From Pavona decussata (taxonomy: Eukaryota), in contig CDRNST010000233.1 of assembly GCA_977016875.1 (NCBI GenBank), positions 434,001-498,000 on the forward strand: a stretch of 64,000 nt of DNA, given 5' to 3'. Positions within the stretch are counted from its first letter, which is position 1. Every line of letters starts with the position of its first letter. The position numbers and the translations under genes are program-made. Of this stretch, positions 38,810-41,800 are shown piece by piece. The notes beneath the pieces are model-generated. The model ran no database searches and was not told where the DNA came from. It saw nothing but the letters and a program-made list of their open reading frames with translations.

Positions 38810-41800
38810 ATGGGATGCAGAGCTCTTGGAATATTCTACCCACGTTCTTTGAGCAAAAGAACTGTTCTTCTCTTTGTTTTTGCCATAACAACTTTGTATA
38901 TCACGATGGGAATTCACCATCTCATTAGAAGAACGAGATTCAGATTTAGCGAAAATGACATAAAAGATTTTCACCAGCAGTGGTGTAGAATGCATAGGTG
39001 GCGGGAGGACTGGGAAGGAATGGCCAAACCCTGTGACGGTCAAGTGGACTGGGAACAGCGGCAAGTAAACTCCGAGTGGAGGACTGATGCGAGGAGCAGT
39101 TTTATCACGAGATGGGAGATACAGCCTGCAGGTAAAATAACATTAAAAGCTATTTTCTCTTGGTTTAACTTAGCGAGCGATTCTCCTGGAGCCCATCAAA
39201 TGAATCTGTTTCTATCGATTAGTAGTTAGCTTTTCCTTTAAAAAAAAAAAAGTATGTAGTTTTATAGCGGAAATTGCACTTTATGTGCCAAAATAGCCAC
39301 CATATCTAAACCGGCTTGTTCGTCTTTCATTTCCAGTGAGGAGGGGGAGGGAGGGGGAGAAAGAAGCAGTGAAACGTGAAGGTTCAATTGATGTTAACAG
39401 ATGTTGCCGTGAGTAACTTGTATCCGCCATCTTGGATTTTAGCACCTACATTGACCACAACATGATCATAACCAATAGAAAAACATAACATGACTTAAAA
39501 ACAGGAAAGTTACAACTGTAGCATAATTAATTTTTGTTTATTCGAATTTCTAAAAACCGTACAGTCCAAATTTAGCTGCCATGGTAACGTTAACTTCAAT
39601 AAAGTTTCAGAACATTAGCCTATCCCAGATTCTCTGCAGATAAATTTCTGAAAAAATTGCTTAGTTTGGTGGCGTTTGGTCACATATTTAAAAACTTGTG
39701 AACGTTTATTGCTCGTGCGTGCAGAATCTTCCCCTCCCGCCAGCGTCTAGATAGAGGTATTCTTTTACAAATTTCAATGTTTTGCCTTTAAAGAAAAGAT
39801 ATTATTTAAATTCGAATTTCTAGCAATGAACATTGCTCGGGTAAAGTTGTTTTCACGCCCGAAATGCTTTCGGGAGTTTGCATTTCAGAAACGCATGATA
39901 AGGCCTTAATTGTTTAAAACCCATTTGGAGGGTAAGATTGAGTTGAGGCAGTCTGTGTATGCTGAGTTACTAACGCCGATCGCTTACCTCCTGTTTCGTT
40001 AACATGGTGATCATAAAGCTATCGGTAGCATTAGATGAATTCCACTAACTTTGGAATGCGAGGGACCACGCAACACGGAACAAGGGAATAAACCGTACCA
40101 CTTTTTCTTTCTGGATCGAAAAGGGGATGTTTTCACTAGCCTCGCATATTAAATTTGAATATATCTTATTTGATGGATAACTTAATGGTTAAATCTTATG
40201 AGATCTAAAGTTTGTCATTTATTACGCTCTTCAAAACTACAAAAGAAGAGCTAGAAATATGCTAAACTGTTCCCCTTAATTAGTTTGAAAATGAACTATA
40301 TATGCACTGATTTAAATTTAAGATAGAACATGTAACACAGTTACTCGAGTTTCACGCACTAAGCGTCTGATGATCGCTTAGTGCGTGAAACTCGAGTAAC
40401 TGTGTTACATTTTCTATCTTAAATTTATATTTCGCTCTGTATGTTTTTGCATCGAGCACTCCTGCGACTGAGTGAAGCAATCATTATATTGTTTCTTTGT
40501 TTATGCACTGATTTATATATTTCTTAGGCCACTTTAGTCGTTTCTTCATCCAGTCCGTAACAGGAGATGGTGTTATTAAAAACTTTGGCGGCGACGCCTG
40601 GAGAGTGTATATCAGACAAGGCCCAGCATCCCTTGCGCCGCAAGTGTGGAACCATGATAACGGACAGTATGAGGTGGTGTTCTTGGCTATGGAGCCTGGT
40701 CACTACTCAGCCCAGATCATGTTGGATTTCACTCTTTGCGACGGTTTACGTGAGCCGCCAACAGACTGGTTCATCAAAGGTTTGGAAGATTAGAGATTTG
40801 TGTATAACTTTGCAATTGTATTCAAACCGCAGATTCAGTAGAGAAGAAACGTTTTACACTTGAATTTAAAAGATGACATATATTTGTTGCACAAACAGGA
40901 ACAGTCCAAGGAAAATACCAGCCCGATGGAATCTTGGGATACATTGGTGATGATTATATACTAGAGCCTCTGGGAGGTCAAACTGCTTTTACTTTCTCTA
41001 TTCCAGAACGTGTCGACACCACGACTGATTTTTCTGCTTTTCAAGGTAAAACTTTTCAACAAACGTTCTAACTGAGAGATTTAATGAGACTGTTTTCCAG
41101 GTATTAAGTTAATAGAAGATGCATATTCCGGATAAATTCACTTTTTGGAAAACAAAAAACTCTGAAAAGAAATTAAGGGCACTAACACTTTGGTAATTGG
41201 TCAGACAAGGCAGGGAATTATAGACTAAACGACGTCCCCCTTTTTTCTTTCTAAATAGTCAAGACGGCGACCTAAGCAAGCGAACAAGCAAACCGAGCCT
41301 TCAGTTTTTTATCCTTGAGTTCCTCTTGCTCAGCGCGTGATTACCTGCTCTATTTTATTTTATTTTTATTTTTATTTTATTAGCTTCGCCATTTACAACA
41401 TTTACAGCATACTGAATTAAATTAGGCACGGTATCCACGACAGCAAGAAGCCAATTACTGTGGACCCGATTGAAATAAAATAGTAAGATAAGCCAAGATG
41501 AATACACTATAGCTAACGACAACAGGTTACTGGACGAGCAAGACTATAGTCTTAAACGTTCAAGGGTTATCGCAGTCATAGTTATCTAAAGCAGTGAAAT
41601 AGTATTTTAACATTACAGATTTAAAACAGGAAAGATTGTCCATACTAATGAGTCAAGTCCAAGCAACAACCATGGACGATAATCCTGCTGGTATACATTG
41701 GATCAATTGTTGATCTGATCGGCTTAACAAAACAAATGATACAAGAAGCAGAGACCGATACAACGTAGAATTACGGTTTAAAGGTTATTATATTTCGGAT

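Follow-up and report, generated by a model that had tools for sequence, protein, structure and literature searches.

The stretch of Pavona decussata DNA analysed here (64,000 nucleotides of contig CDRNST010000233.1, positions 434,001 to 498,000; hereafter the window) contains a putative intron of a Filamin-repeat-like host gene. Within it lies a hairpin insertion that derives from the 3′ end of a Penelope-like element (PLE) and contains the remains of a hammerhead ribozyme. The features of the locus are collected in Table 1.

Anatomy of the insertion and its host intron

A direct-repeat search identified two exact copies of TATGCACTGATTTA, with 187 bp between them, which form the target-site duplication (TSD). 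The paralogous copy of the locus (51995–53142) aligns with this region up to 40302 and again from 40513 onward, and 40303–40512 has no counterpart in it. A preliminary description of the window, made from its letters, had pointed to a 14-bp repeat around 187 bp that are missing from the paralogous intron, and both observations hold.

The insert is organized as an inverted repeat of 51–56 nt centred on UCUGAUGAU. A repeat finder placed the arms at 40310–40365 and 40375–40430 (56 nt, 96% complementary) on either side of the 9-nt loop TCTGATGAT. Only two positions are mismatched: 40312, at the edge of the TSD, and 40329, which is the only one inside the element-derived part (40315–40365) and agrees with the single mismatch reported earlier for arms of 53 bp. 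If positions of the element (el) are numbered from its 3′ end, the upstream arm (N arm) corresponds to el[127..72] of a longer family copy (96% identity, BLAST) and the downstream arm (T arm) to el[137..1] of the same copy (97%); the T arm is also 97–99% identical to more than 30 other copies. The T arm begins 1–2 nt ahead of the hammerhead core and ends at the 3′ end of the element. The arrangement is that of a Penelope-like insertion with an inverted partial terminal copy, as had been proposed.

Compared with the column majority of 30 copies, the T arm departs at 2 of 125 sites (the family median is one difference); one departure is private and the other is common to seven further copies. 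Because the TSD is exact and only one change in 125 nt is private, the insertion is young. The 29-mer that spans its junction occurs once in the 602-Mb genome. Folded as a whole, the insert forms a hairpin with a minimum free energy (MFE) of −105 kcal/mol (z = −15.9), which supports the earlier suggestion that the antisense arm would sequester the ribozyme. The window holds 474 N positions, none of them close to the insert.

The 3′ end of the element lies 25–26 nt upstream of the AG at 40526–27, from which an open frame runs to a plausible AAG/GT donor at 40779/80. We infer that this frame is an exon from the open reading frame (ORF) itself, from a weak match to Filamin in Pfam (E = 2.8e-4, under the curated cut-off) and from its 88% identity to the paralogue. 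An insertion about 25 nt upstream of an acceptor, as previously described, is plausible in its position; the acceptor is a prediction from sequence. The insertion is recent, intronic and in sense orientation, and it places a very stable hairpin, together with a T-rich tract, at a distance of 25 nt from this probable acceptor. It might alter splicing relative to the paralogue.

Table 1. Features of the insertion, its hammerhead remnant and the host locus (window coordinates).
Feature	Position	Strand	Description
TSD, left copy	40301–40314	.	14 bp, TATGCACTGATTTA, exact direct repeat
Inverted partial copy (N arm)	40315–40365	−	reverse complement of el ~72–127; without the 69-nt tail and without CUGAUGA
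Direct 5′-truncated copy (T arm)	40366–40501	+	last ~137 nt of the PLE, ending ...TTTCTTTGTT
Hammerhead remnant	40367–40398	+	descriptor scan; complete homologous motifs in five PLE families
CUGAUGA	40367–40373	+	core, window copy
Stem II segment	40374–40386	+	U-CGC-UUAGU-GCG-U (UCGCUUAGUGCGU); CGC/GCG, loop UUAGU
GAAA	40387–40390	+	core, window copy
Stem III/loop	40391–40396	+	C-UCGA-G, palindromic loop
U16.1-A17	40397–40398	+	predicted cleavage site 40398/40399
69-nt tail	40433–40501	+	on T arm alone; matches the PLE tail between two reverse transcriptase (RT) start sites (PMC11167929, PMC8557442)
TSD, right copy	40502–40515	.	14 bp, exact direct repeat
Putative acceptor AG (40526–27) and downstream host exon	40526–40779	+	predicted; open frame, Filamin-repeat-like, sense to element
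Empty site in paralogous intron	52290–52310	.	alignment contiguous across 52301/52304, insert absent

The parent family and its hammerhead

Both further copies of the insert and a coding PLE family that ends in its sequence were found by BLAST. The 187-bp query gave more than 90 matches in the genome, which fall into two classes: hairpins like that of the window, varying mainly at the loop, and copies that match only query positions 51–187 with 97–99% identity. The second class has a conserved ...ACGGTACAGT-CTGATGA... and continues upstream into coding sequence. In the longer copies, the end of the ORF reads ...CNCRKKDLCPLDGAC...GIVYRADV...KIYIGMT...R..NH...CNLC..E...N.R.E...CRH, with a CxCX5C cluster and 11 residues between GIVY and YIGMT, and its stop lies 31 nt before C3 of the hammerhead. 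A 152-aa query from this ORF end yielded 610 candidates in the genome, and the identities of the scored matches lay between 100% and ~40%. Among the candidates are tandem arrays repeating every 2,396 bp and open frames of 703–729 aa. A tblastn search of the window with Hydra-type PLE proteins revealed no nearby parent element. ORF and hammerhead recur at spacings of 2,396 bp and ~2,571 bp, which defines a short unit (< 3 kb) with the hammerhead in the untranslated region (UTR).

Intact ORFs of sister families measure 703–718 aa, and six sister-family ORFs align well with the fragment of the window family. They contain RWK, ADKT (DKG changed to DKT), ...CRLINP..., FD(I/V)xxFYPSI, MGSxDGAE, the palm motif YRDDG, NFLDVT and a CxCX5C linker. 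No Cys is found between GIY and YIG, CCHH is absent, and CxxC and CxH flank the conserved E and N. In the alignment, the nuclease residues Y...Y-x-G...R..N-H...E...N are invariant and have I-TevI-like spacing. These motifs are diagnostic of the Hydra clade of PLEs (Craig et al., 2021, PMC8557442 section 11), whose members are also described there as less than 3 kb long, as inserting into (TA)n and as invariably equipped with hammerheads. An AlphaFold model of one ORF matched only reverse transcriptases in Foldseek, with telomerase (TERT) among the top matches (best E = 9e-8; 96 matches at E ≤ 1e-3). When a model of the nuclease domain was compared with 48,161 chains (VIA-align), the first two in rank were the GIY-YIG enzymes I-TevI (Z 4.5, with an alignment over 84 of 92 residues) and T4 EndoII (Z 3.8), a weak but specific result. 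Look-alikes retrieved with a language model are eukaryotic proteins of ~700–750 aa, and their clusters carry RVT_1, GIY-YIG (PF01541), HTH_animal and DUF8422.

In the window copy, all positions of the hammerhead core C3-U-G-A-N-G-A9...G12-A-A14...U16.1-H17 are present (40367–73, 40387–89 and 40397–98), and the order CUGAUGA/stem II/GAAA-C-UCGA-G-UA is as first read. Helix II is closed by a loop and has U.U at 10.1/11.1. Helix III, in the context A-C-[UCGA]-G-U, is short with a palindromic loop, compatible with a dimer. Stem I is reduced to 2 bp and its 5′ strand is absent; longer copies of the family have a stem I of 5–8 bp (five Watson–Crick and three G.U pairs). The missing strand (el 140–136), which is retained in 87 of the 144 genomic cores, is replaced in the window copy by antisense stem II sequence. 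Self-cleavage is not expected, because stem I is only 2 bp long and the transcript should fold into the −105 kcal/mol hairpin. With the 5′ strand of stem I lost, the ribozyme would be dead whether or not it is sequestered. The hammerhead claimed in the preliminary description, judged by homology, is genuine and has the palindromic loop III, and it is incomplete at this locus.

Rfam hammerhead models, one of two routes named for its recognition, failed: cmscan at permissive thresholds found no hammerhead family at E ≤ 10 in either the window copy or a copy with complete stem I, and its matches were to generic hairpin and microRNA (miRNA) families only. The other route, a minimal-hammerhead descriptor (stem I ≥ 4 bp, CUGANGA, stem II ≥ 3 bp, GAAA, a stem III that is short and closed, and UH), was successful. 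At all of 16 loci, which represent five PLE families with 43–61% nuclease identity, it located one complete motif 31–247 nt past the ORF stop; its false-positive rate is 0.02 per 64 kb for both strands in first-order Markov random sequence of the window's composition. Minimal PLE hammerheads were first found by descriptors rather than by Rfam models (PMC4209133). In the PLEs studied here, ribozyme and protein alike escape the Rfam and Pfam models.

Conservation of the core and covariation in stem II, both anticipated for true copies, were observed. The core is invariant in 12 sequences from the five families. Stem I differs (ACAGU/ACUGU, CUGU/ACAG, GUUGC/GCAAU, AUCCC/GGGAU and UAUUUAU/AUAAAUA) with its complementarity kept, and stem II ranges from 3 to 10 bp (4–10 bp outside the window family). 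In the alignment of the 12 sequences, 91% of the cells are paired, and both sides vary in 8 of 12 pairs; none of 500 shuffles matched the alignment, and slid registers gave 24–52%. Stem II covaries at pairs 17-37 and 19-35, and stem I covaries too. Loop III and its closing pairs make up the palindrome ACUCGAGU, which in a two-molecule cofold forms an intermolecular helix III of 8 bp (−25.1 kcal/mol vs −15.2 kcal/mol for two monomers, 2 × −7.6). The hammerhead fold of the monomer is weaker than that of shuffled sequences. Such folding agrees with the minimal PLE hammerheads of Cervera & De la Pena (2014), which tend to act as dimers.

Among the miRNA matches, window positions 40337–40403 gave a sub-threshold match to mir-9243 (44.9 bits vs a gathering score of 83; E = 4.7e-8), in which UUUCA.GCA and UGC.GAAA are among the matched sequences. 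This ‘miRNA’ family may itself be derived from PLE hammerhead hairpins; a literature search on mir-9243 found no paper.

Architecture of the copies across the genome

Arms were mapped at 30 loci aligned on a longer copy, 24 of which are inverted insertions. In all 24, one arm extends to el 1, its partner stops at el 69–73 and the 69-nt tail is confined to exactly one arm. The inner ends range from ~125 to 614 and often coincide in the two arms: 139/139 at eight independent loci, and also 158/158, 162/162 and 160/159. At three loci a private variant is found in both arms; single-arm variants number 19. Outside microsatellites, the TSDs are 12–23 bp long (mostly 14–19 bp), AT-rich and have TA at their start; many insertions lie within (TATG)n, (TA)n or (TTTA)n.

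A 38-nt pattern of the ribozyme core, with up to two mismatches allowed, gave 144 copies in the genome and none with the reversed pattern as control; the total for this 3′ end is about 150 copies. At least 17 head-to-head pairs are present among 100 listed cores. Counted by whole-genome patterns, 154 arms reach el 102 or beyond, 144 reach el 135 and 87 reach el 145; about 40 reach the nuclease-coding region (at least 81% identity) and eight the N-terminal part of the RT. This profile is a steep 5′-truncation gradient, as for an autonomous element.

The gradient has a hot spot. Approximately 57 of 144 arms (40%) stop in the 10 nt directly 5′ of C3. Ribozyme-cleaved RNA is not the usual template, because the stretch from the cleavage site to the core holds the ends of no more than ~10 of 154 arms; no arm end at the cleavage site itself was seen among the 30 copies examined. 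Palindromic microhomology as the sole cause of the hot spot was also rejected, as ACTCGAGT is the stronger palindrome and lies closer to the 3′ end, yet junctions do not favour it. Candidate explanations are an RNA 5′ end at el 136–139, a block to the polymerase, or re-mobilization of a hairpin of the 139/139 form.

Origin of the insertion and alternative explanations

We suggest that the insert is, very probably, a 5′-truncated and inverted copy of a Hydra-clade PLE with a hammerhead remnant, dead on arrival and produced by one retrotransposition event. The GIY-YIG nuclease of an autonomous element would make a staggered cut at an AT-rich site, which would give rise to the 14-bp TSD, and the two nicks, 14 bp apart, would each prime one cDNA. 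Near the RNA 3′ end, reverse transcription would start both at the distal end and, ~70 nt upstream of it, at an internal site. The resulting pair of short cDNAs, facing each other, would then be joined just 5′ of the hammerhead to yield an inverted el ~127–72 followed by a direct el 137–1 that includes the 69-nt tail. In the host pre-mRNA, the hammerhead motif would be locked inside a hairpin of ~55 bp, and the window copy is expected to be catalytically inert and immobile.

The individual parts of this model have precedents. Inverted 5′-truncated PLE copies and a tail at one end have been published (PMC8557442), as have minimal hammerheads in PLE repeats, including pairs on opposite strands (Cervera & De la Pena, 2014, PMC4209133). 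In vitro, another PLE cleaves and extends both target strands, and its RT initiates at two internal positions separated by the length of the tail (PMC11167929). Priming from two starts on both strands is inferred here by analogy with that system.

Several results weigh against the PLE origin or against this mechanism. The RT model has a mean predicted local distance difference test score (pLDDT) of 55 and is confident in the core only. For the nuclease, the match in fold is weak (Z < 5), and a Foldseek search with its isolated model returned nothing significant. Pfam, including RVT_1 and GIY-YIG, gave nothing significant at E ≤ 10 for the nuclease piece, the ORF fragments or the full sister ORFs, and a sequence-profile search of the PDB gave nothing relevant or significant. 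A full-length copy of the window's own family was sought and not recovered; the longest of the copies retrieved reaches residue ~143 of ~715. The two-start model stems from the Poseidon element of a lizard, which belongs to another clade. Taken alone, it would leave unexplained both the constancy of one tailed and one tail-less arm and the inner ends that fall on the same nucleotide in many copies. At least eight loci share one junction type, and in this class a hairpin mini-element may have been re-mobilized.

The family resembles the Hydra-clade PLEs (PMC8557442) in its single ORF of ~700 aa with an RT and, at its C terminus, a putative GIY-YIG nuclease, its unit of less than 3 kb (here 2,396 bp), a hammerhead in the UTR, (TA)n-like targets, copies in complex tandem and inverted arrangements, and a tail found at only one end. 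It differs in the length of the tail (69 nt vs the 30–40 bp quoted), and the window's own family is seen as 5′-truncated copies only. The minimal type I hammerheads of PLE pseudo-long terminal repeats (pLTRs; PMC4209133) share the short helix III with the palindromic loop ACUCGAGU and possible dimers, a helix I of 4–8 bp, unpaired nucleotides at the base of helix II, and opposite-strand pairs 100–700 bp apart, most copies being solitary in truncated PLEs. In contrast, the window copy lacks the 5′ strand of helix I and has its motif at the apex of a hairpin, and U.U at 10.1/11.1 is found in two of the five families studied here. As in the work of Frangieh et al. (2024, PMC11167929), we find two discrete outer ends ~70 nt apart and an AT-rich target, and the architecture fits extension from both cleaved strands; that work was done in vitro with the Anolis Poseidon element and does not predict the constant pairing of tailed and tail-less arms observed here. 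All the traits seen here, from minimal hammerheads and tails to truncated copies in inverted orientation and targets rich in AT, have been published for PLEs, and the finding is an ordinary one for the field. In LINE-1 twin priming, an inverted 5′ segment is joined to a direct 3′ segment within one TSD-flanked insertion, and each segment comes from a different part of the element. In the window insert, however, both arms copy the same region, and the result is a palindrome.

The value of the locus is modest and lies in documenting a young and abundant Hydra-clade family, together with sister families that have intact ORFs in tandem arrays. It also provides a natural data set, with fixed outer ends and a junction hot spot, that bears on the unsettled mechanism of PLE integration. 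One tentative reading, which we consider rather unlikely, is that the arm-end hot spot, the same-nucleotide ends and the joint occurrence of tailed and tail-less arms reflect how Hydra-clade PLEs integrate in vivo. As one part of it, and with equally low confidence, the template would often be a short RNA with its 5′ end at the hammerhead, for example a pLTR-initiated transcript. The other part, to be viewed with the same reserve, is that run-off copying from two fixed RT starts, with both cleaved strands priming, would generate the ribozyme-centred mini-hairpins. If true, the both-strand, two-start model would gain genomic, in vivo support from a second PLE clade, and the way the template is defined would be tied to where the hammerhead lies.

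The preliminary description had instead seen the insert as a distinct non-coding element mobilized in trans. In that explanation a dedicated ribozyme mini-retroelement, either retrozyme-like or a hairpin ‘mini-PLE’, is moved as a unit by PLE proteins. Short hairpin copies of similar size do recur, the junction ...CAG-A/T-CTG... with both arms extending to ~el 139 is found at seven or eight loci with different flanks, and the concentration of arm ends just 5′ of the core can be read in the same way. Animal retrozymes have also been proposed to be non-autonomous PLE derivatives (bioRxiv 10.64898/2026.07.22.740005). However, the T arm is collinear with the 3′ end of a coding PLE, just past the stop of its GIY-YIG ORF, the window junction is unique, and the hairpins lack shared diagnostic substitutions. 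The family also has the truncation gradient of an autonomous type. Moreover, the outer boundaries (el 1 and el 69–73) are the same in long inverted copies with arms of 189–614 nt that include coding sequence; one process therefore accounts for hairpins and long copies alike. There are also single copies without an inverted arm whose end falls at this hot spot of arm ends (L023), and the listed cores show no same-strand tandem spacing of 150–400 bp. We regard the mini-element as improbable and leave it some weight because a central deletion of 7–10 nt in the 139/139 form could give rise to each of the window copy, L005/6 and L007. Metazoan non-LTR retrozymes (PMC7229834; bioRxiv 10.64898/2026.07.22.740005) share the type I hammerhead, a weak helix III and a relationship to PLE termini. 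They differ in that we see the 3′ end of a coding PLE without ribozyme-delimited tandem monomers: the tandem hammerhead-delimited monomers of ~170–400 nt that define a retrozyme were not seen among the listed cores of the family, and the locus has a single insert with one incomplete ribozyme. The insert is neither a new class of element nor a retrozyme.

Inverted repeats bracketed by a TSD would also be produced by a fold-back or miniature inverted-repeat (MITE-type) DNA transposon. We find this hardly credible: TSD length varies between 12 and 23 bp, the 69-nt tail, found on one side only, makes the repeat asymmetric, the inner junction differs among copies, the outer ends correspond to the 3′ terminus and to an internal position of a retroelement whose ORF has an RT fold, and the gradient is one of 5′ truncation rather than internal deletion. 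Co-option of the hairpin by the host, as a small-RNA precursor against the PLE family or as a splicing regulator, would be compatible with a PLE origin and is suggested by a near-perfect intronic hairpin of ~55 bp in sense to the gene, by the sub-threshold mir-9243 match and by the distance of 25 nt from the putative acceptor. The insertion is nevertheless very young, as the exact TSD and a single private change among 125 nt indicate, the paralogue lacks it, its junction is unique, and any perfect hairpin scores against miRNA covariance models. We therefore rate co-option as very improbable.

Beside the truncated insertion family with its PLE parentage, related elements were noted elsewhere in the genome. 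At locus L065 (G000:C361:123075-126700) and its neighbours at 121279 and 126071, a sister Hydra-type PLE is repeated in tandem every 2,396 bp, and each unit has an uninterrupted ORF of 714–715 aa and a complete hammerhead 99 nt past the stop. Intact ORFs of a similar kind are present in L066–L069. The families at L065–L069 look recently active. At L067 (G000:C304:95000-98700), a hairpin of the window family (L005) lies ~200 bp from the end of the 715-aa ORF of another PLE family, which is itself part of a head-to-head pair; at this site, PLEs have inserted into a (TA)n tract in a nested or clustered fashion. At G000:C89:2029713-2080691, nine copies of the window-family nuclease end and hammerhead, ~89% identical to the query, are spaced ~5.35 kb apart, and this fragment appears to have been amplified within a larger tandem (segmental) repeat.

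The window itself contains a second, unrelated palindrome of ~150 bp (41738–41887) with arms that are 89% complementary. CUGAAGA, a stem II of 6–7 bp, GAAA and UA are located near its centre, and the hammerhead descriptor is silent on it, since stem I is lacking and stem II has an unpaired A at its base. CCATACTAATG, at 41641–51 and 41887–97, may be a direct repeat. The palindrome looks like the same kind of product, from a different PLE family.

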